In this document: positions 746-32,598 of the stretch, one piece after another
Position numbering within the stretch: the stretch's first letter is position 1
How the letters are laid out: each line of letters opens with the position of its first letter
The notes under the pieces: model-generated
Databases searched by the model: none
The model's input: only the letters and a program-made list of their open reading frames with translations
Told to the model about the DNA's origin: nothing
Translations under genes and position numbers: made by a program
NCBI GenBank assembly: GCA_964035545.1
Contig: OZ037766.1
Coordinates: 21,068,767 to 21,132,766, forward strand
Origin: Bugula neritina
Lineage: Eukaryota; Animalia; Bryozoa
DNA length: 64,000 bases
Direction of reading: 5' to 3'

Positions 746-1186
746 CTGGGTTATGACTCCTCAAAGTTTTGAACCAATTGATGCTTTCTATGTTATCCAA
801 AACTACCATTGTCTCACCCTTAGCTTCACAGCTGTCTCTTGCATCAAACCACCCTTGTACATCCTTATGGAGCTGAATGCAGGTCTTACTAAATGGGTTT
901 AGGACGTAGTCACTGGGGCAAGATACTACAAGTTGAATATATAGTTATTACAAGTATTTATTTCTTCTATAATGTAGAATTTAGTTTGGTTTAATATTAA
1001 AACATGTTAAGCAAGCTTAAAAACTTTTCTACATTAGCATAAATAAAACCTTCTAGCAAAGTGTATCTAATGCATATATAGACAATTAAAGTAAATAAAA
1101 ATGTACTTACATTGAGGCTTACAGCTCAATTTACCAAAAAAGCATACAAGGGACAAAAATAACAAACTCTGATTGAGAGTAGCCAT
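746..1186 (-). CDS. CTL-A: secreted C-type lectin domain protein, 5' part (last exon presumably outside the window)
   Basis: Exon 1 1186-1111 (MATLNQSLLFLSLVCFFGKLSCKPQ, signal-like, gtaagt donor). Exon 2 925-746 (SCPSDYVLNPFSKTCIQLHKDVQGWFDARDSCEAKGETMVVLDNIESINWFKTLRSHNP), with phase-1 AG/GT borders. Exon 2 is absent from the ORF track. Confidence 0.85.
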
Positions 1187-2058
1187 TTCTTCTTCTGATT
1201 TACTTGAATGACTCTGGCAAATAGTAACGCAGCTGTGTCTATAAGTAATGGATATTTGTCTTTTCAAACGTTTTGGTCTACGCTAATCTTTAAAGTGACC
1301 TACATAATATAATACAAGTACAAATACTACAAAGCTTGTTTTGGTAGCATGCCGCATGCTTAATGAGCTAAATTATTTTCTTACCTTGAGTAAATAGTTT
1401 AAACTTGGCTAAACTTTAATTAAAGTCCTGAAATCCAGCAATTTAATCAGCTCACCCATTTGCTAAGAACCGTAATTACACAAGTACTTAAATCTATAGC
1501 TATTCATAAATATGCTTTAATAAGTTTAATACCCAAGTTTAGAAATATTTTACCTAATTTTAGCTGGTATTATAGAAACAGAAATAATAGAAAAAGCTGC
1601 TTAAAAATTAAAGTTTTCGTAAATACCCCTTAGCCATAGCATTCGCACTAATCCAACGATTTGAGTTCAAATATTGGCTGCTTAGCATTTAGATTCTTTG
1701 TAAAACTCTATTAGAGTTAAGCAGCCCTTTTAGTCTCTGTGTAATAAAGGTTTGTTTTATAGTTTATCTAACTTTTGTCACCAATGTTTTACTGCAAGTC
1801 TTAAAGATACCAGAGCTTCATATTAAAGTAAATTTAAATTGGTTAATCTAATATTTCATAATTTTGTTACTATAGGCATATTGTGCAATCGTAAAAGCTC
1901 ATGTAGTAATACTTAACATAAATTACATCATGCTTGATAATGTGAAAAACAAATTTACTTTCACTTTTTATATTTATAGCTAATTTAAATAGTTAAAAAT
2001 AACTGATAATTGATCCACGTAAATTGCGAGTATTTTACTTTGTATGTACAATATAAAG

Positions 2059-4666
2059 ATGGTTAGTTTTCATCAAGCCTTGCTACCTCTGATGCTAGTA
2101 ATCACTTTGTTGGAAGCTAAAGAACAATTGTCAAGTAAGTGTATTATTTTTAAACAATTGAACGTTTGTTTTACATATATACAGTTATCAGCTCTTACTT
2201 TTCAACTTTCTACTCAAATAGAGGCTGCATCATTTTTAACAAAATTTATATGCTTGATTAGGTATCATAATTTTAGTTTGAATAAACTAAGGTAGCTGGT
2301 TTAAATTACATAAATACAGTTTTAAAAAATATTCTGGGTTGGTTTTTTTTACTACTTGATGGTAGATATGGAGCATATGGCTAACATTAAAACATGAAGT
2401 ATTTGTAAAAGAATATTGTTTAAAAGTTCTTTGTATCTAATATTAAATGGGTGCACTCAAAGTTTTGCTGATAATATACTGTATACCCACTAATATGTAG
2501 CCAAATTAATAGAAATAAATTAGTATATTAATAAAGATTTCAATGTTAACAAACCTTAAATTAAACAATAGCCGCCAGCAACTATAAATATAACCTTCAT
2601 TAGTAATACACTATACAACAACATAATTGTAATATTATGTTGGTTGCTTATAGTAGTCAAAATGTGCTAGTATCATATCAATTGCACATATATGTCACCT
2701 TATAATAGCTTGGAACATAATTACTGAAATTTTCTCAAACGGCAACAACAACTTTAATGTTGCATATTATTTAGCATTCTGACTACAAATTTAAATATTG
2801 CCATCAACTAGCCCTAACAAACTTACCAGTTTTGTAACTAGGTAATTACTTAGCAGGTATCTTTTTAATTTTTTATTTTGAAATGATATCATTTTGGTAC
2901 TTTGTATAAAACAACTTAGTATCTCGAAATCATGTTTGTTCTAATCTAGAAGCAAACGCTTCCATTATGTTGAATAATAAAAGCATGTTGAATTTCAACA
3001 TCATTTAAAAAACAACAAGACATAAAAACTTCAACCAGCTACTTGCTTTTTATAAATTTGTATAAAAATCAAAAAAAAGTCTGTTGATCTATTTGCTAGA
3101 GCTTGTATAGTAGAGTACTAATGATTAGAAAACACAAAAATTAACTAAAAAGTTTAATAATTCCAATAAAAAATATGTTGAGCACTGGTTGGCTAAATGC
3201 ATTTCACTGATATTTTAGATTTCAACCAAAACTTTAATGACAATTGCAAAATATGCTAGAGAAACTTGCAAACTGCTTTCCCTATACTCTAAATGCAGGT
3301 AAATTAGTGCAAATTATTACTAATATTCATGTTGACTTTTGCAGGCAGCTGTCCAACAGGATACACATACAATCCAATCAAAAAGAACTGTATAAAATTT
3401 TTCTCCGACAAACTCGATTGGTGGTCCTCCAGAAAAGTCTGTACAGATGATAGCGGTGGTAGTCTTTTAATGTTGGATAGTCTAAATCTTATAATCTGGT
3501 TTAAGAATCTTAGGAAGCATCATTCAGGTACATTTTAAACAATACAAGATACATGTACGTTATGACATATGTATGAGTATATTAGTGAATTCAATTTGCA
3601 ATTGCTCTTAAAGATGGTAGACAGAAAAATACTAACGGAGCTTACAGCCGGCGTAAGCAAGTCATTAATTAATAATTAAATAAATTGTAAATTTTACCAC
3701 AAATTTCAGGTATAACTGTTTAGTTTTGAAGGAAAATATAGACTCGTTATTTAGCTGAGTTGGTAAATTTAAAAAACATTTAAATATTTGTAGCAAAGCA
3801 CCAAGAATATAGTATTTTTTAGTTTTAGAATAAAATTAAAACTGTAAAATATCAACTTGACCAAGTCCACCCATTTGTAGGTATATGAATTATGCTAAAA
3901 ATTCAAAAATAAAAATTCAGTGACCCATGTTGGATAAAATATTTAAAATACAGCAACATCAGATGGTTATTTTTATTTGTATATATTGTTGTTTCATCAG
4001 CAAACAAAATTTAAATTCAAGAATGCAAAAAACAATTTTATAGCTTACGATAAGTTGCAAAATGATGCTATATATGAATTATATTTTATGCATTTCATAA
4101 TACTGAATATCTAAAATAAATTATGCAACATATATTCATTTAAAGAAGACTTTTGTGCAGAAAGTATGTTGGGGAGTGTATAAAATTATGCTTTAGTGCT
4201 TGGTGACCCTATAGCAGTTTTATAAATAGTTAGTTAATTTTAAGTAGCAGTTAATCAAGCATTGTTGTTTTGTAAACTAATTATGAGAGAATCTAATATC
4301 TGCTTTGCTTTCAACTGAAAACAACTTTTTTTCATTCTTTTATAAACTAAACTAAAAACTTTGCTTCAAGTTTCAACTGGAATTTTGTATTTATACAAAA
4401 CTGTTTGCCATATTTTAGATTGGATGCATACACCCGCAGTATGGGCAGCGGGATATAATTATGTGGGCACCTGGGAATGGTTAGGATTAAAGAGAGAAAA
4501 ATTCTTGTTAGGAGATTGGGATTTATCTCAAAATGAACCAAATAGCGATTATAAGAAAAATCAATTTTGCCTTTACATTGGCGAAGCTTCAAAAGGGACA
4601 TGGTTTGATGATGTCTGCACTAGTGAGCGCAGTTTTGTATGTGAAAGTCCAATACCCACATACTAA
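2059..4666 (+). CDS. CTL-B: secreted C-type lectin, ~168 aa, EPN (mannose-type) motif
   Basis: Exons 2059-2134, 3345-3527, 4419-4666, all phase 1. Signal MVSFHQALLPLMLVITLLEA, then CPTGY..C..W....C, VWAAG, EPN, C..WFDDVC..FVCE. Confidence 0.92.
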
Positions 4667-4762
4667 AAATGTTACACTATAAAGCTGTTGTAAAATATTT
4701 ACATATATATTTATTACAAAGCTTGCCTAAGAATTAGAAATAAAAGTATGTGTGCATGTGTG

Positions 4763-4785
4763 TATATAAATATATATAAATATAT

Positions 4786-4854
<69 letters not shown>
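4763..4854. repeat. (TA)n microsatellite
   Basis: Seen directly in the sequence. Confidence 0.95.
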
Positions 4855-4856
<2 letters not shown>

Positions 4857-6250: not shown

Positions 6251-6320
6251 AATAGCCTAAAGCAAATGCTTTGCTTAGCTTTTGCATTAATTCTTTTGCA
6301 ACTTGTGATTACAGTCTATA
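6251..6320 (+). pseudogene. Degenerate orphan copy of the CTL-C signal-peptide exon
   Basis: aaagcaaatgctttgcttagcttttgcattaattcttttgcaacttgtgat aligns to CTL-C exon 1 aaagcaaataatttgcttagctgtcgcattaatactttttgcaacctgcgat. It has a 1-nt deletion, lacks the homologous start ATG and has no GT donor. Confidence 0.6.
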
Positions 6321-6845: not shown

Positions 6846-8068
6846 ATGATATGCTCAAAGCAAATAATTTGCTTAGCTGTCGCATTAATACTTTTTGCAA
6901 CCTGCGATGCAACTGCTTTTTGTAAGTATGAAATTACTGCACATAATTAAAATACAAGAGTAACAATTTAGTAATGTAGTGTATATTGGTATGATATTTA
7001 AAGTAAAAAACTTATTTTATTTTAGTAATTTGAAATAATTTTGCGAAGTTTTATATTTTCTAGCTATTAGTATGACTCAGTATTTTGACCTAGTCATTAA
7101 TTTAAACAGCTGCCTAGTTTAAGTGGTATTTGTGAAAACCATGATAAGCTGCACCTACTTGAAATTGTAGGAGTAATGCTGTTAACCGTATTCTAACTAA
7201 GTGCAAATCTGGCAACAGAAGTCTGGGAAAGGTTTTCTTTAGCAATCTGTTATAAATAAAGAATTGTATCTAAATGGGAAATATTAGTGTGTTGATTAGG
7301 CTACTTCTTTTACTGACTTGAAAATCTACTTTGTACAGATAGATGTCCACCTGATTACACCTACAACCCATACAGTGATGTGTGCTATCGTCTCTCCAAG
7401 AAAATAGATACCTGGTTAAATGCTCAGAAGGATTGTCAGAAAAAGAAAGAAACATTGATAGTTCTGGACACTATACAGGATATTAACTTCTTTAAAACTC
7501 TCTTATTACAAGATCCTGGTATGAATTTGAAAATCTCTTGAACGCTAGTCAAATGTGTGCAGAAATTCTCTGTGGCTAATATTCTATCAAATAATTTATA
7601 AAAATAGTTTAGATTATGCTTTAAATAGTGATAGCTATTATGACTATCATATTTTAGGCACAGTTTGACTAATAAGCTGCTGAAAATGAATCAGTGTTTG
7701 ACATTGTAAATTTTATTGGCATTGATAATAATAATAATTGGTCTCATATTTTTGTATATAATGTATGCTATCCTTTAGGCTGGATTTCGACAACAAATCA
7801 TCAATCATCTGACATTTGGACAGCTGGTATTGAGACCTATAGCGACTGGGTTTGGAGCCTATGGAATGATCCCGAACACTTAGCACAAAGACAAAAACCT
7901 ATACACTTTGCAGATTGGGGCTATAAACAGCCCATGGATGTTTACCTACTTCCTCGAGCTATATGTGTTAGTCGCCGTTATTGGTGGCAATTTGTCGCTA
8001 AAGATTACAATATAAAAAATAAGTATGCGTGTCAAAGACCTGGGTCTGACTATAATCTTCACAATTAG
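6846..8068 (+). CDS. CTL-C: secreted C-type lectin-like protein, ~181 aa, QPM motif, one conserved Cys missing
   Basis: Exons 6846-6921 (MICSKQIICLAVALILFATCDATAF), 7339-7518 (YRCPPDYTYNPYSDVCYRLSKKIDTWLNAQKDCQKKKETLIVLDTIQDINFFKTLLLQDP) and 7779-8068 (IWTAG..DWGYKQPM..RAICV..FVAKDY..YACQ). All introns are phase 1. Confidence 0.9.
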
Positions 8069-9376: not shown

Positions 9377-9712
9377 CTCTCTCAAACTTATAGTAACACG
9401 CGTCATGTTCTATAATGCACAATAAAATTTATTTATATATCACTACAGCAGCAGTGCCCTTGATACTATAGTTATTCTCATCTCCAGCATAAGTGAAACA
9501 CAAGCCAGATTTCAGAATATATTATATCAGGCAATCAACCTCAAAGTATTCCTATATCCATATGCTCAACTTACCTGTCGCTTATTGGCAAATAATTGCT
9601 TCTTGGCTGTTATTATAAAGTCATATGCAGGCTTATGCTGCTTTAATATGATCAATAAATATTATTATAATGAAATTTTCGTATAAATGTCCATCATTTA
9701 AGATTAAATGTT

Positions 9713-10953
9713 GCTCAGCCACTCTTTCAAACTCTATAAAAAAGTAATCAAAGCACGGCTAAGGGAGTTGGTCAAGTTAAAGGACAACCAGTATGGTTTT
9801 CAAAGAGGCAAATTTACTACTGAGCCTATGTTTTGCCTTTGCATTCTGCAGGAAAAGTACATTGAATATAATAAAGAACTGCATATGGTATTCGTGGACC
9901 TGGAAAAGATCTATAATATCATTCGAAGAGAGCTAAGAAGGAAGCGCCATCTACCCGAAGCTTACATCAGTATCATCAAGGATATTTACAAGGATACAAC
10001 AAGAGTAGGAACAAATGCGTGAGAAACAGGAGAAATAAGAGTAGAAACTGGACTACACCAGGGCTCGACACTAAACCAATTGCTTTTTAGAATTGTAATG
10101 GATGTTATCTCGAATGACAATGGCGAAGTCGCACCATGCAAGGAGCATGCTGTTTGGAGATGATCTGGTACTATGTGGTGAAAGTAGAAACAACATAGAA
10201 GAAAGATTGGAAAACTGGAGAAGGCGATTAGAAGATGTCGGCTTAAAAGTCAGCAGGTCTAAAACAGAGTACCTACCACCAAAAGAAAGCAGTGATGACA
10301 TAAAAATTGAAAGAATTCGATAGCTCTGACTATGCCACTTTGCCTCAAAAAGTCACTTCAAAGTACCTTGGGACTACAATCCACCAGGATGTAGGACAGA
10401 AATGCAAGTGCGCATTGGCAGAGCCTGAGATAAATAAAGGAAGCTGGCCGGGATTTTGTGTAACCAGAAAATCCCAAAAAGACTCAAGGTCCTCATTTGC
10501 AAGACCCGATTCTATTATATGGGCGGAAACATGGCCAGTGACTAATAACCTTGCGGAGAGAGTGAGTGTATGTGAAATAAGAATGCTGCGCTACTGCCTA
10601 GAAATTACTCTTGAAGAGCATAAGACCAGCGGAAGCATAAGGCAAGAAGCGAAAGTGATGAATATGTTACAACTGATGAGAAGAAGAAGGCTACAGTAAT
10701 TTGAACATATATGCAAAAGAGCGAAAGATGATGATATCAGAAAAGTGCATGAAATGAAAGTTGCAGGAAAGGGAATTGAGAATGCCCAAAGCACAGATGT
10801 CATGATACTATTAGAAAAGACCTCCAATCCTGTTCCCTCAATAAAGAGGACGCTCAGGACAAGGTTAGGTAGAGAAGCCTAATTGCGCTAGGCATTCGGC
10901 AGCCACCGGCTACCCAAACAGGTCAAAGAGGAGATAGCTGAGAATAGGTGAGA
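9713..10953 (+). mobile_element. 5'-truncated, frameshifted RTE-clade LINE (reverse transcriptase fragment)
   Basis: Peptides LLSHSFKLY..NQYGFQRGK..VFVDLEK..GLHQGS..MLFGDDLVLC..KYLG. A 17-bp TSD atttaagattaaatgtt is at 9696-9712 and 10954-10970. Confidence 0.9.
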
Positions 10954-12490: not shown

Positions 12491-15400
12491 ATGCAGATAC
12501 AATCGTATTGGATCATCACTTGTTTATTATTTGTGACCAACTGGTCAGCAAATGGAGTGGAAGTCTCACGTAGGTTATACAAGTACTTGTGCTGTTTCCT
12601 CTGAATTTATGTGTATTTTGACCAGAAAACTGTTGATTGTGAAAATGATTATATATCCTAAATTAGAAACTGTGTCAGTTGTACACATGTGTAGTTAAAA
12701 TGTTTGAAAATTAACAGCAATTTATATACACTATATATATATATGCATAAATTGCGTTATCTTGAAAAAATTCATCAGCAACTAATTAAACGCCATATGT
12801 GCTATTTGCACAGTGCCAATGGCTGAAAAGGTTTTTGTTTCAGTCATTAATGCCGTCCACGACATCATGGCTATTCAATATGTAGATGCTACTTCGCAAG
12901 AACATGAAGGTGTACTCAATATCACAACAAGCTCATCAGCAACTAAAGAAAATGGTAGGTTTCAATTGCGTGGTGAGCGTTTGTACTAGGGCAATTTCAT
13001 GCAGTCTGTGTCATACATTTAAACATCTACAGATCCAGTCACCTTTTAATCAGTTTCTGAATATTCTATAGTTTTTTTATATTTGAATTTGACACCTTTG
13101 TAGCAGTCAACATTATTTTTGCATCAGCTCAACCTTGCCACATTAGGCTAGATTCAATATTTTTCAGACAAATCTCGGAGCTATTGTAATATAAAAGTTT
13201 TACTTTTTATAGAATGTATAACTTATATTTACTAGAAGCTGAATTAAAGCATATAACACGACAAAGGTAAAAGTGCATGCATGTGTGAATGTACATACCT
13301 ATAAGCGTATTATTACAATGTGATTATGTATATTCTTGTTTGTTTTACAAAACACAAAAACACAAGATTGTACCCATAACTGTATAACTGTACAAATAAG
13401 GTTTGCTCATGAAATCAAAGAGAAATCCTGCTACAAACATGGCATATGAATAGTGCTCAGTCAGGCATTGATGTAAAGACAAAAAACTAGGCTATTTAAA
13501 TCAATGTAAAAACTATTTGCAATAAGCTGATTGGTAAACTGCCTTAAAAGTTTGGAGTTGTCAATCTTAAAACAAAAGAATCATAGCAGTGCTTACCTAC
13601 CATATTTGGAGGTTTGTCCAGTCTAAGTTAAAATAGCTTTTCACAGCACACGAACAAGTGTTACTTAGTTATTTTGCTCAAAATAGTGATAAACAGACTA
13701 TGGATTTATATCTGAGTAATTACTATACATTTATGTTTTATTATTCATCATGCATCAAGCATTACATTATTTAACTATTTTTATGTATTTATAATGAGTG
13801 TAAAGTTTTTATTAGATAAACGGCCAGGTTTACATATAATTACTGAAATTGAATCACTGTGCTTTTCACCATTTTGCACAGCTGTAGTTATAATTAGATA
13901 AAGAAACCGACAAGTTTTAAACAAGTAATGAAATTTCATATCGTCTACTTTTAATGTGGCAATATTGGGATGTTTTGCAGCTTTTTGTATATTTAATCAT
14001 GTTTTTAGCTGCTTCTGTGGAAGAAACCACGAGTTCTACTGAATATGTGGTCTCTAAGTCTCTAGACAATGAAAATATCACTGGAGACATTTCAGAAAGT
14101 AAGTATATAACGTTACATAACAAAGACTTGCTATGTTTTTAAGTTGAATGTTAATAAGAAAACTGCAAAATTATTGTTTGTCTCCCATGGGTGAAAAAAA
14201 GTTTGTTGATTAAAGCAAAATTCCTATTATAGCCAAATATCACCTTGTAGTCTAGCATCCCTGTAGTTATTATTAGCAGATGTTATGACTATCATGATCG
14301 TTTACTACTACATAGTTTCTCTCACAGCATTGGATATGCATGCTACTACAATCAACAGCCCTGAATTATTTACATCCTTACATAAAGAGTCACGGTTCAG
14401 CAGTTTCGAAGATTTTTTATGTATTTATAATGAGTGTAAAGTTTTTATTAGATAAACGTCCAGGCTTAAATATAATTATTGAAATTAAATCACTATGCTT
14501 TTACCATTTTGCACAGCTGTAGTTGAAATTTCATATCGTCTACTTTTAATGTGACAATGGGATATTTTGCAGCTTTTTGTATTTTTAATCATGTTTTTAG
14601 CTACTTCTGTTGAAGAAACCACGAGCTCTACTGAATATGTGGTCTCTAAGTCTCTAGACGATGAAAATATCACTGGAAACATTTCAGAAAGTAAGTATAT
14701 AATGTTACATAACAAAGACTTGCTATGTTTTTAAGTTGAATGTTAATAAAAAAAACTGCAAAATTATTGTTTGTCTCCCATGGATAAAAAAAAATTTGTT
14801 GATTAAAGCAAAATTTCTATTATAGCCAAATATCACCTTGTAGTCTAGCATTCCTGTAGTTATTAATAGCAGATGTTATGACCATCATGATTGTTTACTG
14901 CTACATAGTTTCTCTCACAGCATTGAATATGCATGCTACTACAATCAACAGCCAGGAAATATTCACAACCCTTACATAAAGAGTCACAGTACAGCAGTTT
15001 TGAAGATTTTTAAAGTTGCTATCACAAAGGTTGAATAGCCATAAATATAAAAAACAGTGGAAAACTTGTTTTAAACCCCCTTAAAAGTTAATCTTATATT
15101 CCTTGCAATGAAAAACCACTGGTTTAGCTATAGATGCTGTATGCTAGGTTTTATAATATTCTATTTTTTTAACTTTTTACCCTTTCTTGCTCATCCTATA
15201 AACTATTTTCATTCATATTTGTTAAAGCCAGTTCAGCTCTTTCTGAAGCTCTGAAGCCATTTGTTAAAGAGACGAGCCCCACCAACCAGACTATGAAAAC
15301 AGGTGTTGTGTTAGACAATTCAACAGATACCAAAAAGAACGAGACAAAGGGTGAGTTGTTATTAGACAGCATTCCCATATTTTGCGGTAGCAGTAGCAGT

Positions 15401-16554
15401 AGCAGTTGGCATACAATGGCAAATAAAAACCTTGCAAGCCTATGCCATTATTTTATCCAGATCATTCTGTTAGAACAAAAAATAATACGTTTTAAGAAAG
15501 TTTATTTGCCAGAAACATCTATAGTGGCAGCTTTATGCTTTGTTTTATATCAATATATTTTGTTGCTAAGCCTTAATTCAACAATAAATGCATTCATTCC
15601 CACAACTATCCTTGCAGGGAGACTTCATCCCTCTCGACAAACAACTCCAAAATTACAAACTACTGCCACAAATGTTTCGCATCTAGAAGGAAACAGTAAG
15701 TCATAATTACATTCAGAATATTATTATATAGTCAGTCATTTAATTTCTAATAATTGTAAATATTTTATGTGAATTGAAAATTATTTTTTTATTTGATAAA
15801 TAAACATTTGCATCAAGTGGTAAGCGTTTTTTACATGTGCTGTAACTTGATACTTGTTTTAGGTGATAGATGTCCTCATGGTTATGTCCATTACCCAGTC
15901 ATGGACAATTGTTTACGCCTAGATAAACGCCCAGCCAACTGGTTTCAGGCACACAGAGACTGTGAGCTGGCAGGAGATCATTTGTTAGTACTGGACAATC
16001 CCAAACTGATGAACTGGTTTAAAATTCTTCGGTCTGAGCACTCTGGTTAGTTTTTTGCTACAAAACTTAAACTTCATCAGTGTTCTTGTTTTGCATACAT
16101 TTAATACTTTATAGTAGAATTAAGATGCTGTAGACTAAATGTTTGATTCAATTACTAACTGTTTTTTTCTTAAAGCCTTAATACAATTTATCAACTGTAA
16201 TTTTGAAAAGTGTATTAGCTATATAATTTCTGTAAATTGTAATTATATGTTTTGGCATTAACTGAAACAGAATCAGCATTGTGTGTTTTAGACTGGGAGA
16301 ATGATGAGCCCTTGTGGATAGCAGGCAGGAGAGCTGGTAGGGTATGGAAATGGTATGGCAGAGTTCGAGGTATCATTACTCAAACAAATTGGAATAATCA
16401 CACTCACGAACCAAATGCCCACTCAAAAGTTGATGCATGTGTCCAAGTTTTACCTGGATACTTTGATCATCTTTGGGACGACCAGCCGTGCTCTCACTAC
16501 TTACATTTTGTGTGTGAGAGACCAGGCAAAGACTATTCCCATATAAATGCATAA
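12491..16554 (+). CDS. CTL-D: secreted C-type lectin with N-terminal Ser/Thr-rich glycosylated stalk, ~338 aa, EPN/WDD
   Basis: Exons 12491-12569 (MQIQSYWIITCLLFVTNWSANGVEVS), 12844-12954, 14009-14098, 14601-14690, 15228 (or 15237)-15350, 15618-15695, 15863-16045 and 16292-16554. All are phase 1 and join to an open 1017-nt frame. CTLD: CPHGY..LWIAG..EPN..CV..WDDQPC..FVCE. The CTLD exons are certain; the stalk exons are less so. Confidence 0.82.
13777..15011. repeat. Tandem duplication of ~600-635 bp (13777-14412, 14413-15011), each unit carrying a 90-nt coding exon
   Basis: Near-identical units run from ttttatgtatttataatgagtgtaaag to cagcagttt(c/t)gaagatttt. Copy 2 has a ~39-bp deletion. Confidence 0.92.
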
Positions 16555-19152
16555 ACAGAACTGTCTCTGATGTTTCATTCTTCTCGGTCTATTGTGACTC
16601 AGCTTTTTAATAAAAAGTTTTAAATTGCCCCAAATTTAGTTTTGCCCTCAATAATAAATGTCTTAGCATTTTAAGTTTACTATAAAATAAATCAATATAC
16701 ATATTATACCTATGTGGCTATGTCTATTAAGTAATGAGGTAGTGTCATGTAAACAATATAATTAATACACAAATTGCCAACTATGTACTGTAAACACTAG
16801 TAATGTGTGTAAGAAAATATACAGTATATTATATGCTATTTGTTGTTTGGATAACTTGCATAAATTGAGCTTTAAATATATATACCTGCATCCGTAAATA
16901 CACAGGCCTATTTTTCAATATTATAATAGTTTGTATAACTAGTACACAAGTATGAAATCATTGTATTTACCGAATTGTGTCAAAAATCCTCCATATAATA
17001 TAAAACATTCTAAATTAAACAGCCAAAATACCGCTGCATATTTTTAACCAACTTAGTTGTTTAGTCATCTATACTCTAAGAATTTCATAGATGCGTTTAA
17101 TTGTTAAAAACTAATAACAAATTCAAGCTAATAGATAATAATATAAAGTACAGACTGTTGGTTTAACTAAATGTCGTTACTCAAATCTAAGCACTAATTA
17201 TACATTAATGTGTTTGTGTTAGGGCAACTAGTGTAACAATTAGATTTTGAGGTTTGGGCAGAAACAAATAGTGAACATTTTGGCAGTTGAAATTGTAAAA
17301 TTGTAAAATTTCTTAGACTGGTATCCTACATGTACATGCTGAAATATTTTGTTATGTACACAAATACTGCTGCATCAGAGAAAGGGTAGATGCAAGAGCT
17401 AATAATAGGAGTACAAAGCCTTTCACCATTTAATGATGGTTTAAAAAACACTGTTTAGTGTTAACAAAATTATTCACTGCAGACTCCTGAAACAGGGAAG
17501 TTACGGATGTAGGTGAAACAATATAATGTTGATTTTTACATCTGAGCACTATCAAACCTAATGCAACCATGTGCAATAATGATTTAAGTTGAAACTTGCT
17601 TTTTTATCTGTTTAGTAGCCCATTTGCTTAGACCTTAAAAGCTTAAAAGAAACTGACATCTGAATAGTAAAGAAAAAGTACAGGTATGATGAGAAAACAC
17701 CAGAGCAAAAGTCTCTGTTCAAAAACATTAAAAATAAAAATTTGTGTCATTAAGTAAGGATTATGTTGAAAATATTTTTGACATGATTTGTGCTAATATA
17801 CATTTCAGCTCAATCCGAAACCATCAAGCAATGGTAGTACCTTACTTCAATAACAACTCCTGCTGTTTACCTATTTTATACTAATAGCTACCCGTTCATT
17901 AAGTATTACAACTGTTGGTCTTGCACACAGCTTGATCATGTATGCAAAACAGCCTGGCTGGTTAATTTGGACTGACTACTATAGTAGTTGCTATATAATT
18001 AAGTATACTATCCTAAATTATATGTTTCATGCTTCTTATATATAGTTTCTATATACACTTGGGCTATAGGGAGTTTGAATTTTCTTATCATTTATTTTAA
18101 AATAAAACTCTTAGATCTTTATATTTCTAAGGTTTTTGTTTTTGTTTGTGTTTGCCAAAATGAATTATAAACAGCTGTTCAGAATAATAATTAAATGTAT
18201 TTTGGTTACAATTGCTATGAATTTTGTAAGGGTCACCTGTCTTAGAAAATTGTAAAACAAAACTACAGCCCTATTAGATCTAACGATAAGATGTGACACT
18301 CCAAGTTTGTACCCATGCAGTGTGTGAGATACAAAACAGCAAAGTTGAAATTAGGAGTTTAATTAGACCTAGACTTAGATAATGTTGTTGAGTGAATACT
18401 CAAAACTTGCTTTATGAATAAAATAAATTTATGTTATATCACTGTACTGTATGTTTGTTGTTTTATCATGGGAAATAATTTTAGGCCCATATACACCAAC
18501 TGAATAATTACCCAACTTAGTGTACAGGCAACTCACATTGTTGCAGTTGCAGTAAACAATGAGGTGTATACTGTCACTGTATAAAGAATAATATTAGAAT
18601 TTGTTTCTGGGTGTTTTGTCTTGTGTTGCTAAACTATTGCAGTTTTCTAGCCATACTTAGCAGCTTTCACTGCAACACTTTACAAGTAGTAGGGCTACAG
18701 ACTTTCATTTTCTTAAAGCGAAAGCCATTAGTCTCAGAAAACAACTTGTATATTTTTCGATAGATGAAAAAATAAACACACAATCTAGTATATCTTTATT
18801 CAATGAAAATAAAATATTTATAAATTACTGCACCAAACATGCGAACAGCTGAAATTTGTAATTATTTTATTTTATGTGAAAATGAACTATGTCCATCAGA
18901 TTTTACAAGCTAATGCACTATTATAGATTGCATTTTAAAAGCCACCAACTGCTACAAAATTCATCAATCATTATTGGTATTTGATAACCTGCAGGCTATC
19001 AAATACCAACTGTTTAAGGTAATTACATTAATCAAAGTATTTGAGAAAGTTAATAATTAAGAGGCATAAAACAAGTATCTCTGACAAAATTTTCACTCTT
19101 AGTAAAAGCAAATGTCATCAAGAAATTGACAATCATGACTAAACTGAACTAT

Positions 19153-21176
19153 TTAATACTTTGAAATAGGCCTCTCGCACATGTATCTCTTTTTCCTTGA
19201 ACAATCATCTTCTGCCCATGTCAAGTCTGGGAACCCCAACTGTTGCAGGCAGACACGTTTTGGGTGATTCTTATCTAAGCCGAATCTAGGTCTCCCACGC
19301 TTGTAATTGCTTAATAGAATAGGCATTCCAGTTTTGCTACCGGATCCCCATCTCCAAACGCCATCATAGTTTTTTCCTCCTAGCCAAACTTGAAACTTTC
19401 TCCATTCTGAATCACATAAAAACTCAACTATATTTTTATCTCATATTAGAGTATTTGAGGTATGCTGCTTATAGTGAAAAATCTGCAGATTATGTCGTAT
19501 TTTTCACTGTTTATTATTGCTAACTGTAGCATGTTGATAATATGTTAGTAATTTTCATCTTTCAGATTGTTTTTTATGTTGCAGGTTGTAAATTCAACTG
19601 CAGGTAATAACTACCAATATTTATTGCTAAACAACTATTTGATATTCCTCTAATAAGCTGACGTACTCAGGCTTGAAAACAAACAGATCACTGAATGTGT
19701 CTTTCATACCATACCATACCATACAATACCATACCATACCATACCATACCATACCATACCATACCATACCATACCATACCATACCATACCATACCATACC
19801 ATACCATACCATACCATACCATACCATACCATACCATACCATACCATACCATACCATACCATACCATACCATACCATACCATACCATACCATACCATACC
19901 ATACCATACCATACCATACCATACCATACCATACCATACCATACCATACCATACCATACCATACTATACCATACCATACCATACCATACAATACCACCCC
20001 ATACCATACTATACTATGCCATAACAGCTGGTCATCCATAACAAGGTTTAACTAATTGTGAGTTTGCAGTTATGATAGATTTTTTTCATCAAATTGTGGA
20101 TTATAGTTTATAACTTGAGTAGTGCACTACTACATCTAAATCATATATTATCATTAATTTCTATGGCTAACAAAAATAAAACAATATTGTTACAGATGAA
20201 ACAAAAATCAATAAAAAAACAAAATGTATGTGTATACTAGTTGTTCATATTTGCCGGATTTGAAAAAAAGTTGCTGGGCTTTGCTGTTTTAGCAACTTAT
20301 AAGACGTAATTTCAATGCACTCACCGTAAAATTGAGCTCTTAAAGTTCTAAATCCCACGATATCTTTAATTGTATCCAATACCAAGAGTGAGTCATTGCT
20401 TGCCCTACAAGCCATGGCGGCATCGTTCCATCCCAGCTCGTCATAAGAGAATCTCATACATGCTAGTTTAAAAGCTCCTAACATGTATCCTTTTGGACAC
20501 AGCTCTAAAATATACATTACATTTATTTGCGATTACTGATGAAAATAAGTCCTAGGTTCTTAAAAGACTGATACTTATTTGCAAGACATACAGAGTCTAA
20601 ATAAAATATAGCTCTCAGCTTTGCATAATGTTTGATAGATACATATAATAATCCTAACACAGGATATTTAATTAGTGTTTTGAACTTTTTTGAGAAAGTA
20701 CCTTTTTTCTACTCTAATATACAAGCACTTATTTATTGAAGAGTTTAGAAATTTTTATAATTTAATGTAAAACAAGCAAGTTTACTAGTCAAATTTATTG
20801 TAACCCTTATATAAGAATGTTTTCAGTTGTTACTAATTAAAACAAAAAGCAACTTATATTTTTCCTAGAATACAAAACATTTTTCCCTACAAAAATTGTT
20901 TGTGTTGAGATTTGATTTTCCCATGTGTTTTTTACCATAATTCATTCTTTGTAACAAAAATATACTAACTATAGAAGTATTTAAGCAATTTTGTCAGCTC
21001 CATCAGTATTTTTGTAAAGTAAGTTGTTAATTGAAGCATCATAACACACTAAATTATTTCATTAGTCACCTACAAAAGTCATTATGACAAGTTTGCTTAC
21101 CCTGATTAGCTTTAGTTGATGGTAGCCAGCTTGCTACAAAGAAAAAAGCTCCAACCATCACATAGTACTTCAGCAT
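19153..21176 (-). CDS. CTL-E: secreted cationic C-type lectin-like protein, ~169 aa, RPR/WAE
   Basis: Exons 21176-21101 (MLKYYVMVGAFFFVASWLPSTKANQ), 20504-20325 and 19406-19153 (EWRKFQVWLGG..NYKRGRPRFG..VCLQQLGFPDLTWAEDDCSRKKRYMCERPISKY*). Introns are phase 1. Exons 1 and 3 are absent from the ORF track. Confidence 0.92.
19705..20020. repeat. (CATAC)n pentanucleotide microsatellite in CTL-E intron 2
   Basis: Seen directly in the sequence; it generates the spurious MVWYG/PYHTI ORFs. Confidence 0.97.
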
Positions 21177-22930: not shown

Positions 22931-25529
22931 TCACCATATAACTAAGTTATCTTGCAGGCTTGGTCTCTCACACATGTACTTTCTAGCAGTCCCGCAATCA
23001 TCTTCTGCCCAAGAAAAGTCTGGAATTCCTTGAACTTTAATGCATACAGTTTTAGACGTGGTACTGGCTGGCTTAAATAAGAGTTTACCAGATTGGTAAG
23101 TGGCTGGCAAAAAAGGAGAACCGTCTACTCTACCGTACCATTTCCATTCACCACCAGTCCTTTTACTGCCTATCCACACAGGCTCATTTGTTTTCCATGC
23201 TAAAAGCATAAACCCATAATAATGCTAGTCTTTAATTTTAACAAAGTACTGTCACAGAGCACATTTGTAATTTGCTAAATAATCTCTGGCTCACTGTAAC
23301 ATTTATGTAAAATATTTTATGGAGATATTTTCTAATTGGTGATTGTTATCTTTGGCATAAAAGCCCCAAAAACTTTTTAAGCAGCACAAATTCTTCTATA
23401 ACAAATTTAAAAACTCAAAAAACTTATTTTACTTACTTACAAAAAATTGATAAAAATATTTCAGCACTATTATTATTATTTGGTTGTATCACAGCTTTTT
23501 AGCTGGTGTAACCTTCTACCATCGGCCTAGTTTCACTAGGCTTGGATGGATAGAACTTTCCTCAAGATGTGAGCTGATCCTAGTAAGGCTGTCTGCTGAA
23601 TCAGTGGGTATTTGTTTTTAGCTACTCCAAGTAGGTCCATCCAGTCTACAGTTTTGTGTGAAGCTCCAAGGGCTCCAATTACAATGGGGATGACTTTTTT
23701 TGATGTTTTCCAAAGGCGGGTTAACTCTAGTGCTAAATCTTGATATTTTCTTATCTTCTCTAATTCTTTTCTTTTACTCTGTAGTCACCAGGAACTGCGA
23801 TATCAATGATTGTTGTTTCAGTATTACGCTTGTCAACTACTACTATATCAGGCCTCCTAGCTTCGATGACTTTGTCGATGTGTATGTTGAAGTCTCACAA
23901 TATTTTTACATTGTCATTCTCCAGTACTGATTCTGCTAGGTGGCCGTACCAAATTTTGCTTCTCTGAAATCCATGAAGTTCACACAACTTCCAGTGAATT
24001 ATTGATGCCACATGGTCGTGTCTTTTTTTTATATTCTCCTTGTGCTAACTTCTCACATTCACTCAGTATATGCATCACAGTCTCGTCCTTTGCATTACAC
24101 ATCCGACACTTCTTGCTACCTTGTTCCTTCATTATAGCTACTTTATAATTTCTAGTAGGGAGTGCTTGATCATGCATAGCCAACAGCAGTCCTTCTGTTT
24201 CTTTTTTCAGCTAACCAGATTTCAACCATTTCCATAAGAATGTTTTCATGTCTTTCACCTTTCTGATGTACTGACCATGGCCTTTTTTTCCACTCATCAG
24301 TTTTTTCTGATTTATTGTTCTTAAGTTCTATCGCTGTTTTGCCCTTCAGGAAGGTATTCAGAGTAGTGTCTCCATCAGTGCATGTCCTCTTTATGTAATC
24401 TGACATGCTGCATTCTTCAATCTTTACACATTCTTCAATTGACAACATCTCTCTGCCCCCTTCCCTTCTGCTAACATACAGTCTGTCTACATCTGCTCTT
24501 GGATGGAGTGCAATGGGATTATTATTATTATTATCATTATTACTATTATATTAAATTTTTGCACAGCTCAAACTTGATTTTTCATATGTATATGAATAAT
24601 GCAGAAAATAAACTCACGCAAGTTTATAGTCGCTATCCCTGTGAGAAACCCCTGTTGGAAAGGGTTTTTATTAGAACGGGCTAAGGACTAGTTCAAATGA
24701 GGCACAAGAGCATTTATGACTGGATGCTCTTCCTAACATCACCAATGGCCTTTGTCGGGTTCGAACCCATGACTTCGTGTTCACAAAGCAAACGCTTTAA
24801 CCCCTAGACTACGACTGCTCCCTGAATAATGCAGAAAATAGCTGTTTATTTTTTCAATAAATAAGATTTCATTTCTTTTCGTTAAATAAAAATTATCTGT
24901 AAATGACTACAAGCAGTAAATATATAAAGTAACCCTGATGATGAGTTTACACCAAGTTTTGGTTGTTCAATTGGTATAAAATTCATTTGAATTCAAATGC
25001 ATACTATAAGAGCTAATAAAAAAACCGGTTTAAGGAGCCATCACTTTTTAAGTACCTTTCAATGTTTTTCTTTGTGTTTTAAACCATGTAATCAGCTCTA
25101 AAGTGTCGAGTACCAACAATGTGTCACCACTCTCTTCACAGGCAGCTTTGGCAGAGTCCCAGGACCTTTGATCTTGAGAAATTCGTACACAAATGCTGTT
25201 ATTGTTGCTCTGTACATATCCTCCACTTGGACACAGCGCATCTAACATATTATTCAGAGTGGAAAAATAAACTATTCATAAAGCAGAAAAAGTAATGATT
25301 GTTTAAAAAGTCAAAATTATATTTTTATACTAATTATGATTGTGTGAAGTTTACAACAAATAGCTATAAAAACTTATAATTACAGTAAAATTTTATTATT
25401 TGCAAAACAATATTGTATTCAGTTTTTTTATTATTTAATGTACTTACCAGAACTATTTACTTGACACGCTACGAACCACAAGACAACAGTGAAGAAAGTT
25501 AGTAGTGCTGTTTGACTTAAACTACTCAT
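22931..25529 (-). CDS. CTL-F: secreted C-type lectin-like protein, ~178 aa, no EPN/QPD (KLL), WAE
   Basis: Exons 25529-25448 (MSSLSQTALLTFFTVVLWFVACQVNSS), 25241-25056 and 23199-22931 (VWIGS..VCIKVQGIPDFSWAEDDCGTARKYMCERP). Introns are phase 1. Confidence 0.92.
23481..24518 (-). mobile_element. 5'-truncated non-LTR retrotransposon with restriction-like endonuclease, R4/Dong/Rex6-like, in CTL-F intron 2
   Basis: HPRADVDRLYVSRREGGR, CCHC knuckle CRMC..ETVMHILSEC, and RLE motif RRPDIVVVD..IIDIAVP..EKIRKYQDL..PIVIGALG. It contains frameshifts and has (TAA)n on both flanks. Confidence 0.88.
24611..24822 (-). mobile_element. tRNA-derived SINE with 18-bp TSD
   Basis: The minus strand begins gggagcagtcgtagtctaggggtt (A box) ... 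gggttcgaaccc (B box). TSD tgaataatgcagaaaata at 24593-24610 and 24823-24840. Confidence 0.88.
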
Positions 25530-26824: not shown

Positions 26825-28538
26825 TCAAAGATTAATATATTTCCGACAAGCAAAATAATTTTCATCGGAACAATCAGGGTCCATTCAGCCACGTGATGCA
26901 TAAGACATTTTTGTCAGCATTTACAATATCCTGTCTTTTAGATACAAAATCAGACAGGATTATGGGAAGTTTATTATTTTTGTAACCATTCCACTGCCAA
27001 ATGCCTCCGTCTACTTTCCTTTCCAGCCAAATGCTCCTGGAAGCCCTTGACACTAAAATGACAATAAATCGTATAGCGATGTAGGGTGTGATATATTTGA
27101 GCATTATTTGTAGCTAGAGTACAACAGAAAGTTAAAATGCTGCAACTAAGTAATCAACTAAGTAATTATAAAAGATGCACAATTATAAATATAGTTTGGT
27201 ACACTTTAAAAGCTAGTATAGCTTCATTTACAACTAGTTCTATACGCAAATTATCAAGTGCGCTATATTTAGCTTCAGGTTTAATGCTAAAATTGATGTA
27301 GAGCTTATAACATACGCGTATGCACTATAATATACCCGCGCATGTATTATACAGTATTATATCTGCATACATTTCAAATTTTGAGGCTTAGTAAGTTTAT
27401 TGGCTGAGAGAAATTAATCTTAGAAGCTAATGAAACAATAAGTTGGACATATATAATAAATTTCATAGCTTGATAAAAACTAATAGGTATGTTTCAATTA
27501 TGTTACAAAACTACACCAATTTCCCCGTGAAAAATTTTTTTTTTTAGTACTACTAAATTGGCAGTGTTTAGGAAATAATATATTTTATTTAGTCAATCTA
27601 TTTGTGAAGAGCTTGCAACAATTAGGATAATGCAACTAAGTGTTACAAACACTCATAACTAGCAGCTTGCACATATAACAACAATATCATATCATTATAC
27701 ATGGAACTTATGCTGCATTTTCCTTCAGCAAAATTTAAAAAAATATACTTGATAGAAATTATCGATGATATTAACTTATTTTCTAGTCTGTCGCACATGC
27801 TAACTTCAATCGACCAGCTGTTTAAGGCTTGCTGGCTTTGTCTTCAAACTGTTTATTAAGACTCTTAGGAGTGTTGGCTGCTTTGGGCTTACCTCTTTTA
27901 AGGCTGGTCTAGGTGCTGAACCAGCGAATCAGCTTTAGTGTATCAAGGATAATCAGCCTTGCTCCCTTTTTCTCTCATATAAATTTAGCTTTGTCCCAGG
28001 TAGCTGTGTCACTAGATAAGTATACACACAACTGTTCTTGTTCATAGTGCATATGTCCAGAAAGACACTGGTTATCTATATTGCACAGAAAAAAATATTT
28101 TAAATATAGTATCAAGTTTTTATAATGACGTATAGTTTAGGGTTATGAATACTTGACCTATTTCAGCTAAAATCTCACCAATAGATTTATATGCAAAAAG
28201 TTTTATCATAAAATAAAGTCTTCCATAAATGTAAGGGCAACACACTTTTGTATAAAAAACTGATTAAACTTTTGATGTTTTTTGACGTTTTTATATAAAA
28301 ATTTATGATAAACATATTGAATTTTGTCATAATTAAGCTAAAAGCGTTCACATTGTGATAGAGTGCACAATAACAATGTTTTAAAGCCATTAAGTTTTGT
28401 AAAGTTATAAAACAATTTTAATTATATAAAAAGAAAACTGGTTTATAAATCACTAATATCAGCTGCCATACAGGTAGTGACGATAGTGGCAGCAATTATT
28501 AACAGAGAAACAACTTGGTTTGAGCCAAATCTCGCCAT
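26825..28538 (-). pseudogene. psi-CTL-G: pseudogenised duplicate of CTL-H
   Basis: Exons ~28538-28460, 28075-27893 and 27052-26825. In-frame stops TGA (27975-27977, replacing the conserved Cys) and TAG (27909-27911). Exon 3 is frameshifted relative to CTL-H and the exon-1 donor is degraded. Confidence 0.9.
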
Positions 28539-31074
28539 TCCTTAGCTTAGCATAAACTACAATGCAGCAACATATATCAGACCCAATATTTTATAGAACT
28601 TAAATCTTCATGCAGAGTTGTTGGGGTCATTATTTTTAAGAAGCATTCAATTTAACTCGTTGGTTCTAAATTATAACAGGTTAACATAAGAAGTAAGGCA
28701 TATAAAATCTTGTAGTTTATTATTTTGCTTATTGTGGGCATGTTTATTGTATAGCAGACATACAAATTATACTGATACAGTTTCTTAGCAAGCTTGATAA
28801 TTTAATTTCAGCTGACTGGCAAAGAATTATAATGTCAAAATTATTACATAATAATAGTATAGCTCAAGTGCCAAGTATAAAATAAAATTGCTTGTTCTTG
28901 AAGTTGTTAATAGAAAATAATGAAACCTGTTATTCTTTTAATTTGACAACTTTGCTAATTAGTATTTTGTACTCACTTTGACAAAAACAACTATAATAAT
29001 CAGAATAAATAGGTTTCAAATACATTGCTTATGACTCTTTTGTTAAACTATAAATTTGAAAATTAACTGTTTTTCAGTAAGAGTTGGCGCTGTGTTATAA
29101 CTTTTATTTTCAAAAACTTTTTTTTTCACTTTTTAATTTACATGCTTTCTGATCATATCTTGTGGTATACATCCACCAATATGTTGGTCTTCTTTTCTTT
29201 TCTTTCTCTTGTCTGCCAAACAGATGTTGTTAATTTTATATCTTCTTGGTTTCTGCAAAGCCTTCCTTTTACGCTTTTACTCTTGATGTGTTTTTGATTT
29301 TCTTATTTTTTTGCTCTTCTATGCTGATGCTACAGATGTGGCAAAACATTTCCATTTTGATCAAACAAAATAAACTTTCTACAACTACTCATAAAAATAA
29401 ATCAAGTATCAAGGTCTCATCTAATTCTTTGAACTGAAATTTATTAGTTGAGAGCTTTTGCCTCAATTTCAGTTTTTACTCATCAATATATACACAGAAA
29501 AGGAAAAAGGGCAACTAAGTAAAATATAATAATCATTTTACATTTGTTGTTTTAGTTCAGAAAACAATTCTGTGACTTATCTATTCTAACATGGTATCAT
29601 AATTATAAGTATAACAAGCAAAATGTAAATCTCAGTATTAAGTAGTTTACTGTAATATAGTTAAACCACAGGGCTGTAAAATGAACCCCATGCATGCTCT
29701 AAATTTTCTCCTTTTATTTATTGCACCCTTTTATCTTTTTCACTTAAAAGCGTTTTAGGTAAACTATATCAAACATATGAAACGATCTGAAATCAAAGCA
29801 GAAGTTTTCAGGTGAGCAAGTATTTTTCACATTTTTTGCATATAAAAATTGATCAAATTAAAAATTCATTTTTTTCATAAAAGTAGCATAACTTCTCAAG
29901 CTTTAATAGATTAGTCAAATACATTCAGGCATGTATTGTCAACATGATCTCAAAGCTGGGCAATAATCTAAAGTTGTAGAGATATCTCAATTGTTTAACT
30001 TTTGTATAGAGCAGTTCAACCTGCCCTCTACCTGGCACATTACATGTGCCAAAATACTTACAGTCAAAAAATTGGGCTTTATCTTAGTGAGTGAAATGTG
30101 TATGCATTTAATTTTAATAGTGCTGGTTTTTGAATTGACAATAAGTTTTTTTCAAAACTTTTGCCCAAAAACAAAAATGTTGGTTCTACTAGCCTCACCC
30201 TCCGTTACAAAAAATGCAATTATTATTAATGTCACTTATTTCTTACTTTTTGAAAAGTCAGAGTAGAAAATTGACAAAATCTCCTGCAGAATCGCTGGAT
30301 ATTTATATCCTTAACTACGCAGTTCAGATTAAATTGGACTAAAAGATTCTGGAAAAGCCTAAACTTTTATAGCTATATCTTTGAATTTTTGCTAATGTTA
30401 TATTGTAGCTTCGTGTGCTGGTGTTTCATAGAGCTGCCCTTACTGTCAACTGCACTTCAAAACTGTGTATAATCTAAGTTGGCCCAGGTTGTAGTTGTAA
30501 GAGAAATTGAGTTCTTATTTTATTTGTTGCTTTTAACATTGCTTCATAGCTGTTTGATAACAGCTGTTGAAAACATGATTGAATTATTGATTGGATTTAT
30601 CAAATTATTACTTTGACGGCCATGAGCTAATTTTTGATCTGCAAACAAGCTTTTGCATGATGGTTATTGTGTTGCTTGTTACTAACTCTTGGCTGTAAAA
30701 TATTATATACTGCTTTGTAATATATGAGTAGTATAAGATAAAACTACAATAAAAAAGTTTCAGTGCTTACAAAAGTCTACTTTTGTCACTAGTAGTATCA
30801 ATGCTGTTTTTTAGTTGCATGCAGTTACCTTTAGATAAAAGTGGGTTAGCAAAATAAAAAGATTGTGCGCTTTATTGAGTCTATCAAGTTTACAAAAATA
30901 CACTAAGGCATTTTTATGTCTACTAAAACTTATGCATAGCTTGGAAATGATTATTTTAGTAAAATGATGATATAATATGTCTGTAATTACTCAAACCATA
31001 TCCCTGACTAATACACTATGCTCAATTGAAAAAGACTTGAGTTACATTAATCAGCACTGGTGGTAAATTTTTGA

Positions 31075-32598
31075 TCAAGGATTGATGTATTTCTGGCATG
31101 CATAATAATATTTCTCAGAGCAATCAATGTCCATCCAGCCATCAAACACTCCAATGTGATGCATAATACATATTTTGTCAGCATTAAAATTAACTGGTCT
31201 TTCGGATAGAAAATTAGACAGGATTATAGGAAATTTATTATTTTTGTAACCATTCCACTGCCATTTGCCTCCTTCTGCTTTCCCTGCCAGCCAGATGCTT
31301 TTATCAAGCCAGTCTAAAATGACAATGTATTGTATAGTGATGTAGGGTGACAGGGTATATAACAGGACATTAAAATGCTGCACATTCAAGTAAATGACAA
31401 AGTATAATTATACAAAATACAAAATCATCAATATATTACTTTGGTACACCTTAAAAGCTGATATCTAGTTTTATTGGCAACATATGGTTCCATTCACAGG
31501 TATAACTGAGTGAGCATTATTTAACTTTAAATTTATGCTATATCAATTTCGTGTTTTCCGATACTAAATTACCAGTATTGCAAAATAACATAATATTTTA
31601 TTTAGTCAATAAATACCATTTGTAAAATACTTGCATTAACAAGACACTGTGCTAGACTAAATATAACAGCTTACGTATACAGCAACAATATATGATATCC
31701 TATACTTAGGACTTATGGCGTCTTTTTCATTCAACAAAATGTTGAAAAAGAGACAATAGAAAATACTTTATATCAACGATATGAAGTTATTTCTCAATCT
31801 ATTGTACACACTAGCTTTAATTGACTTGCTATTTTAAGGCTTTCTGGCATTGTTTTTCAAACTTTTTGTTAAGACTCTTAGGAGTGTTGGCTGCTTTGGG
31901 CTTACCTTTTTTAAGGCTTAACTGGGTGCTGAACCAGTGAATCAGCTCTAGTGTGTCAAGGATAATCAGCCTTGCTCCCATTTTCTCACACGTAAATTTA
32001 GCTTTGTCCCAGGTAGCTGTGTCACTAGATAAATGTATGCACAACTGCCCTTGTTCATAGTGCATATCATATCCAGAAGGACATTTCATGCCATCTACAT
32101 TTTATACAAAACATTAGTTTTAAAATACATTAATTCTATAATGGTAGTTTAGACTTTAGAATGAGGAATACAGTTTTGGCTAGTTCAGCACTATCTTATA
32201 CTGATAGACAAATATATATGCAAGAACCTATACTGTAAATATATAAAAAATAAAATCTTCAATAAATGAAAAAAATAATCTATTTGGAAACAAATATCTT
32301 TTGTAAAAAAATATTGATTAGGCTTTGTTTTCTGCTGCTGGTTTTAATATTAATTTTTATGTATACAGTGAATAAAATATTGAATGTTGTCATAAGAAGC
32401 TAAAAACATCTGCATTGTGATACAGTGCACAATAACAACATTGTATATAAAGCTGTTCAGGCTTGCAAATTTTGTAGAAAACTTTCAATTTAAAAAACAC
32501 TTGTGATTAAATCACTTACTAGCTGTCGTACAAGTAGAGAAGATAGTGACGGCAATTATTAACAGAGATGCAACTTGGGTTGAGCCAAATCTCCCCAT
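31075..32598 (-). CDS. CTL-H: secreted C-type lectin-like protein, ~168 aa, RPV/WMD
   Basis: Exons 32598-32520 (MGRFGSTQVASLLIIAVTIFSTCTTA), 32094-31906 and 31313-31075 (IWLAG..NFLSERPV..KICIM..WMDIDC..YYYACQ). Introns are phase 1. Confidence 0.92.

Follow-up and report, generated by a model that had tools for sequence, protein, structure and literature searches.

Small secreted C-type lectins are well described in bivalves, where codakine, CgClec-2, MyCLF and SPL-1/2 are single carbohydrate-recognition domain (CRD) proteins that consist of a signal peptide and one C-type lectin-like domain (CTLD), about 130-150 residues in length, and have undergone lineage-specific tandem expansion. Their ligand-site motifs vary, and sugar binding is retained in bivalve lectins with EPN/WFD, EPN/WDD, QPS, QPN or KPD and in ones that lack a motif altogether; for some of these lectins it does not depend on Ca (PMC12842671). 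The locus reported here has the same general plan in a bryozoan. The stretch of DNA that we analyzed, called the window below, comprises 64,000 nucleotides (21068767-21132766 on contig C2 of a 216-Mb Bugula assembly), and its positions 746-32598 hold seven intact lectin genes and one broken gene (psi-G) that form the right-hand end of a larger tandem array. It is likely, in our judgment, that this array is an old, lineage-specific CTLD expansion with slow turnover whose members are secreted recognition-type lectins.

The likeness to the bivalve proteins extends to single motifs, as gene B carries EPN/WFD and gene D carries EPN/WDD, and codakine is among the best single-domain matches of the array profiles in the PDB. 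However, there is no close sequence relationship between the two groups. When 1.84 billion representative proteins were searched with a profile, 4778 matched; proteins with many CTLDs dominated the top of the list, and the single-domain entries among the top 150 were all Bugula open reading frames (ORFs) orthologous to array members. No distant taxon yielded a one-to-one orthologue in this search, with a ranking too dominated by multi-CTLD proteins for a strong claim of absence. As a bryozoan family, the array has a three-exon, phase-1/1 structure that is fixed and peculiar to it.

Two other groups of CTLD proteins resemble the array. The best PDB profile matches, obtained with both halves of the domain, are members of the mannose-receptor family (PLA2R/FcRY, DEC-205, MRC1 and Endo180; E 1e-11 to 1e-18, with scores partly inflated by summing over repeats). 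Like the array proteins, the CTLDs of this family are long-form and many of them are without sugar-binding residues, but they are arranged as 8-10 CTLDs in a large membrane receptor with ricin-type and fibronectin type II domains, whereas the array proteins are predicted to be single-domain and secreted. Reg/lithostathine, the type II antifreeze proteins and the snake-venom C-type lectin-like proteins are small secreted CTLDs in which the scaffold is kept and EPN/WND is replaced, and 1lit, 2py2, 2afp and 1jzn are among the PDB matches. The array shows no specific sequence affinity to any of these proteins, whose ligands are ice, bacterial membranes and clotting factors; by analogy, CTLDs that have lost Ca and sugar binding may nevertheless serve as a model for genes C, E, F and H.

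The array is considerably larger than the part of it that lies in the window. A local hidden Markov model (HMM) search covering 80 kb to the left recovered 12 further exon-2/exon-3 pairs, and counted in such pairs the full array has 20 members, 18 of them intact, over about 85 kb (window coordinates -52034 to +32598). It extends 52 kb left of the window, which contains its right-hand eight genes: A on the minus strand, B, C and D on the plus strand, and E, F, psi-G and H on the minus strand, equivalent in this order to g13 through g20, with g01-g12 to the left. The preliminary description of this DNA had recognized eight units on these strands with a shared three-exon scaffold, and translations, splice borders and signal exons all bear this out, as they do a pseudogene and orphan exon remnants: psi-G is interrupted by stop codons and a frameshift, and the fragments at 6259-6297 and 18914-19057 are likely to be orphan exons. 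Its count of eight members, however, has to be raised to 20, and the last exon of A itself lies beyond the window. The second broken member of the 20 is g03, which has a stop in exon 2.

The window genes follow a common plan of a signal exon, an exon 2 of 180-189 nt that has clean splice sites, is bordered by AG and GT and is in phase 1 on both sides, and a last exon that starts in phase 1 and reaches its stop a few residues past the final Cys. The predicted product of about 170 residues has a signal peptide and then a single long-form CTLD, without a stalk, membrane anchor or further module. A, B, C, E, F, psi-G and H each have a signal-like first exon 0.2-1.3 kb upstream, 76-85 nt in length and likewise in phase 1 at its end. 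In seven of the eight window genes the first exon, which is conserved in B. neritina, encodes Met and a hydrophobic core of 17-28 residues. The mature parts, which contain no further hydrophobic segment, have a net charge near zero except in E (+12).

Assignment to the CTLD superfamily was made with exons searched singly and statistics summed across exons, the sole full-length protein used being P0004, the public orthologue of H. For B, D and F the last exon is sufficient by itself to exceed the gathering cut-off of the Pfam Lectin_C family (PF00059; 22.6 bits). The exons of C, E and H fall below that cut-off when taken singly, the last exon of H giving a weak match, and the local family HMM recovers them with E values of 1e-20 to 1e-33; P0004 as a whole scores 30.5 bits over profile positions 3-106. 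Peptide profiles of exon 2 and exon 3 match solved CTLDs in the PDB (E 1e-16 to 1e-18), among them mannose-receptor-family CTLDs, codakine, rattlesnake lectin and selectins. Six Cys, corresponding to Cys C1-C4 with their two disulfides and to the additional N-terminal pair that marks long-form CTLDs, stand at aligned positions in 16 of the 18 intact genes, C having five (Cys C3 is absent) and g02 seven, and the W-I/L-G/A-G motif of the WIGL-type strand is present in nearly all members. Judged from these sequences, the array genes encode predicted secreted proteins with a single long-form CTLD and are members of the CTLD superfamily.

On this scaffold the motifs at the EPN/QPD and WND positions differ widely. 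Those of the intact window genes are given in Table 1; to the left of the window they read EPN/WLD (g01), EPN/WED (g02), QPD/WGT (pseudogene g03), EPN/WND (g04), QPD/WDD (g05), EPN/WDD (g06), SPA/WKE (g07), DPD/WFD (g08), QPS/WDD (g09), DPD/WYD (g10), QPN/WDD (g11) and QPD/WDD (g12). The readings given earlier for B, C, D, E and H are correct. That of F as KLL/WAE depends on the alignment and is supported; one alignment gave KPA as its first motif, which we dropped in favor of KLL because the loop has the same length as that of E and the B. neritina orthologue has KPL. EPN is present in A, B, D, g01, g02, g04 and g06 and QPD in g05 and g12, while C, E, F and H have neither.

In mannose-binding protein A, Ca site 2 also requires an acidic residue two positions ahead of Cys C2. 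In the array this residue is found only in D, g04 and the non-canonical g07, g08 and g10, and D (Asp; WDD) and g04 (Asp; WND) are the only members in which every Ca-site-2 ligand position is filled. A, B, g01, g02 and g06 keep EPN with one or two ligands missing: A has EPN/WND but an Arg two residues before Cys C2, which leaves it one ligand short, and B, with Gln at that position and WFD, is two short (the Glu and the WND Asn). C, E, F and H have neither the acidic residue before C2 nor the Asn-Asp of WND, and the array as a whole does not have the make-up of classical Ca-dependent CRDs. The proposal that B and D alone are classical sugar binders is therefore not sustained for B, remains plausible for D, and could not take account of A, whose EPN/WND exon is hidden outside the window. 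Since the bivalve variants still bind sugars, motif reading alone cannot sort binders from non-binders. From their residues, D and g04 probably bind mannose-type sugars via Ca. For C, E, F and H a different geometry of sugar binding, or a ligand other than sugar, is probable, as is known from related CTLDs.

A word search with the last exon of B and the exon-3 alignment matched only Bugula proteins, namely the GenBank B. neritina models EB796_022699 (P0004, 169 residues) and EB796_015390, together with ORFs on JGI and Logan host contigs; in GenBank the orthologues are labelled as hypothetical or C-type lectin domain proteins. The window and its left flank align collinearly with public B. neritina contigs, at 81-87% identity in introns and spacers and 85-97% in exons (90-97% for most, 85% for H), which makes the window genome that of a close relative of the B. 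neritina already sequenced. Conservation extends to the signal exons, and the NCBI models of E, H and g07 start where these exons are predicted. Apart from the first motifs of F and H, the orthologues retain the motifs, including such oddities as RPR/WAE in E and WAE in F. The psi-G interval is absent from the syntenic B. neritina contig. In a separate observation, two contigs both labelled B. neritina differ in exon 2 of g06, which is 95.5% identical to the window genome's copy in L012 (NCBI) and 93.8% in L013 (JGI host), a slight difference which suggests that the public data may include more than one B. neritina lineage.

A tree of exon-3 peptides joins every paralogue to its counterpart in B. 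neritina, on short terminal branches that contrast with long internal ones. The duplications are therefore old, and by this tree all intact paralogues are older than the species split. Younger duplicates are g09/g11/g12 and g08/g10, with about 81% DNA identity and dN/dS (the ratio of replacement to silent change per site) of 0.18-0.51, and a two-gene unit, g08-g09, has been duplicated to give g10-g11. The recent duplicate reported in the preliminary description does not stand, as H and psi-G share only about 72% DNA identity. Copy gain and loss do occur, as seen from two pseudogenes among 20 members, the psi-G interval missing in B. neritina and one two-gene duplication, and turnover of the array is slow.

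Rates of replacement were compared in nine pairs of syntenic orthologues (dS 0.16-0.32) from Nei-Gojobori counts, with exons 2 and 3 added together. The ratio dN/dS was 0.06 for g06, 0.07 for g05, 0.10 for g07, 0.11 for g04, 0.16 for F, 0.18 for E, 0.20 for B, 0.50 for C and 0.82 for H, so that seven of the nine pairs lie at 0.06-0.20 and no gene exceeds 1. Strong purifying selection acts on most members, the non-canonical E and F among them, and fast evolution is limited to H and, to a lesser degree, C. Pooled by segment, dN/dS was 0.29 in the loop at the EPN position (0.20 without H), 0.18 in exon 2, 0.24 in beta3-beta4 and 0.36 in the tail, and this comparison across the nine pairs shows no excess of replacement change in the ligand loop. 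Among paralogues the loop has the highest entropy, mildly so, at 2.31 bits against 1.7-2.1 bits. Diversifying selection on the loop, for which a site-wise dN/dS test had been suggested, is thus not seen, with H as a possible exception.

H and C are the outliers. The signal peptide of H is identical at 26 of 26 residues between the two Bugula, with 3 silent changes (window 31075-32598 compared with L011:10001-11542), and the mature part has 53 replacement sites and a motif that reads KPD/WID in B. neritina and RPV/WMD in the window. With psi-G as outgroup, both lineages of H evolve at approximately the intron rate, and a relative-rate test between the two species shows no asymmetry (p = 0.67); this rate fits relaxed constraint and diversifying selection equally well. 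In C, Cys C3 is gone, which leaves Cys C2 unpaired, and an 8-residue insert follows the WxW strand (window 7779-8068; L014:577-853). Both features are common to the B. neritina orthologue and therefore predate the species split, and the frame is open in both species.

Taking the array as an old expansion of recognition lectins, its proteins would be secreted as soluble binding proteins that contact their ligands through the long loop and strand beta4, with a specificity of its own fixed in each paralogue. Ca-dependent binding of mannose-type sugars would be confined to D and g04, and the other members would have altered, Ca-independent or non-sugar sites. The genes would then form a germline panel of humoral or mucosal lectins with which a filter feeder recognizes microbes or particles at its surface. 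Several points weigh against this reading. The recognition role, which we consider the most likely one, is argued by parallel with molluscs and arthropods. The signal peptides were called from hydrophobicity and position alone, and exon 1 of D at 12491..12569 is a probable and uncertain assignment. The Logan and JGI contigs that carry array exons are unspliced genomic DNA, not transcripts. An AlphaFold2 model of P0004, built from a half-length alignment with exon-3 rows only, reached a mean predicted local distance difference test score of 51.7 and a predicted template modelling score of 0.31; its order of secondary structure fits a CTLD, and its quality is too low for a comparison of folds.

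A bolder version of the same idea, which we regard as rather unlikely, is that the array is a stable germline panel of soluble CTLDs with many distinct and partly non-sugar or Ca-independent specificities, with H, at its edge, as a fast-evolving member that switches from KPD to RPV behind an invariant signal peptide; such a panel could sort symbionts, food particles and pathogens. It is suggested because most members have non-canonical yet strongly conserved binding loops. Bugula keeps a vertically transmitted bacterial symbiont, and were such a panel to exist it would give bryozoans their first described functional lectin system. The preliminary description had instead proposed a birth-and-death repertoire, which in its fast form would mean diversifying selection on the loop in an arms race with microbes. 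Pseudogenes g03 and psi-G, the orphan exon remnants, the absence of psi-G from the syntenic B. neritina interval, the g08-g09 duplication and the high loop entropy among paralogues all speak for it, as does H with its dN/dS of 0.82, switched motif and invariant signal peptide. Yet seven of the nine orthologue pairs are strongly constrained, the pooled ratio of the loop is not above that of the tail, motifs are conserved between species save the first motifs of F and H, the long internal branches place the intact paralogues before the species split, and for H itself, at the intron rate in both lineages, relaxed constraint fits as well. The gain and loss of copies therefore stand, but with slow turnover and old paralogues that are one-to-one with those of B. 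neritina the fast repertoire is quite improbable.

Two further explanations do not involve recognition. Small secreted single-CTLD proteins, most of them without a complete Ca/sugar site, might be structural or matrix components of cuticle, skeleton, larval adhesive or feeding mucus, comparable to perlucin-type and spicule-matrix CTLDs and bivalve mucosal lectins. Lectin_C domains occur among lophotrochozoan shell-matrix proteins (PMC13425148), and the strong purifying selection and fixed sequences of the array would suit housekeeping extracellular roles. Unlike many matrix proteins, however, the array proteins are neither acidic nor repetitive, their charge being near zero in all but E; twenty differentiated paralogues are many for a structural role, and a literature search found no evidence from a bryozoan skeletal proteome. 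A matrix or adhesive role, the chief alternative to recognition, has in our view a small chance. It is extremely improbable that the non-canonical members C, E, F and H are in decay or have lost their function: the odd Cys number and dN/dS of C, the dN/dS of H and the dead neighbor psi-G would agree with decay, but E and F are strongly constrained with WAE, and RPR in E, conserved, the frames of C and H are open in both species, and the missing Cys C3 and insert of C are older than the split. The old array of recognition lectins thus accounts best for the locus as a whole.

The array is one of many such clusters in this genome. Lectin_C has at least 100 matches genome-wide and the exon-2 profile of the array at least 119, and further clusters with exon 2 of this type lie on C2 at 29.93-30.04, 31.86 and 33.30 Mb and also on C4, C6 and C9. 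The first of these (C2:29935000-30040000) contains about 10 repeats, identical in score, of a unit of about 9 kb with two opposed genes that share this type of exon 2; the repeats reflect a tandem amplification of very recent date or else an artefact of assembly. A pattern scan of metagenome contigs with a narrowed exon-2 alignment gave 197 pattern matches, none of which was confirmed as a related locus, and our search of the literature on bryozoan or Bugula lectins found nothing specific to this family or locus. Nevertheless, the locus is not the undescribed system for which it was first proposed as a candidate, as the pattern of expanded invertebrate C-type lectins is well described and the orthologues are already in GenBank. 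It adds no new kind of system, expanded and motif-diverse secreted C-type lectins being standard in invertebrate genomes. Its value lies in a resolved locus of 20 genes which, with their orthologues, provides natural variants of the Ca/sugar site on one scaffold, and such a collection would allow the predictive reach of the EPN/QPD and WND rules for binding to be examined.

Table 1. Features of the window and of the adjoining last exon of A, in window coordinates unless another source is given.
Feature	Position	Strand	Remarks
A last exon	L005:9347-9583 (415-653 bases left of window base 1)	minus	EPN/WND; outside window
A exon 2, first CTLD half	746..925	minus	180 nt
A exon 1, start codon and signal peptide	1111..1186	minus	76 nt, phase 1; hydrophobic N-terminus; gtaagt donor
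B exon 1, signal peptide	2059..2134	plus	76 nt; conserved in B. neritina contig L010
B exon 2	3345..3527	plus	183 nt, phase 1/1
B last exon with stop	4419..4666	plus	EPN/WFD; Gln replaces Ca-ligand Glu; Lectin_C 27.3 bits
Orphan signal-exon remnant	~6259..6297	plus	87% identity to C exon 1
C exon 1, signal peptide	6846..6921	plus	76 nt
C exon 2	7339..7518	plus	180 nt
C last exon	7779..8068	plus	QPM/FVA; without Cys C3; 8-residue insert
Retrotransposon fragment (reverse transcriptase) between C and D	9708..10699	plus	RVT_1, below cut-off
D exon 1, probable only	12491..12569	plus	79 nt, phase 1, signal-like; 3.3 kb upstream
D exon 2	15863..16045	plus	183 nt
D last exon	16292..16554	plus	EPN/WDD; Asp two residues ahead of Cys C2; Lectin_C 30.1 bits
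Weak exon-2-like orphan fragment	18914..19057	plus	E 0.007
E last exon	19153..19406	minus	RPR/WAE; loop 4 residues longer
E exon 2	20325..20504	minus	180 nt
E exon 1, signal peptide	21101..21176	minus	coincides with B. neritina gene-model start
F last exon	22931..23199	minus	KLL/WAE; KPL in B. neritina; Lectin_C 28.7 bits
Retroelement fragment in F intron 2	23980..24448	minus	zf-RVT
F exon 2	25056..25241	minus	186 nt
F exon 1, signal peptide	25448..25529	minus	82 nt
psi-G last-exon remnant	26877..27052	minus	frameshift and early stop
psi-G exon-2 remnant	27890..28075	minus	two in-frame stop codons
psi-G signal-exon remnant	28454..28538	minus	signal-like
H last exon	31075..31313	minus	RPV/WMD; KPD/WID in B. 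neritina
H exon 2	31906..32094	minus	189 nt
H exon 1, signal peptide	32520..32598	minus	all 26 residues identical in B. neritina P0004
Patched / sterol-sensing-domain multi-exon gene	35542-51000	minus	collinear with 1083-aa B. neritina Patched-domain gene, 87% identity

The right border of the array is formed by the Patched / sterol-sensing-domain gene. To the left of the array are CTLD-type ORFs of a different kind, one of which (L004, window coordinates -58820 to -58353) reads through the position of the second intron of the array genes and belongs to a different lectin subfamily.

The introns of the window genes carry several insertions and repeats. The probable first intron of D contains two copies of a repeated, ORF-bearing element (13917-14123 and 14485-14715, minus strand), and the retroelement fragment in intron 2 of F marks an insertion of about 1.4 kb that is missing from B. 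neritina. Within intron 2 of E, a pentanucleotide microsatellite of about 400 bp (19627-20041) reads as MVWYG or HTIPY repeats in all frames. The window is AT-rich, with 27-37% G+C. Beyond the Patched gene, a 224-aa ORF on the minus strand (55674-56348) has no Pfam match, and a trinucleotide low-complexity repeat of about 680 bp (61763-62441) is open in several frames.

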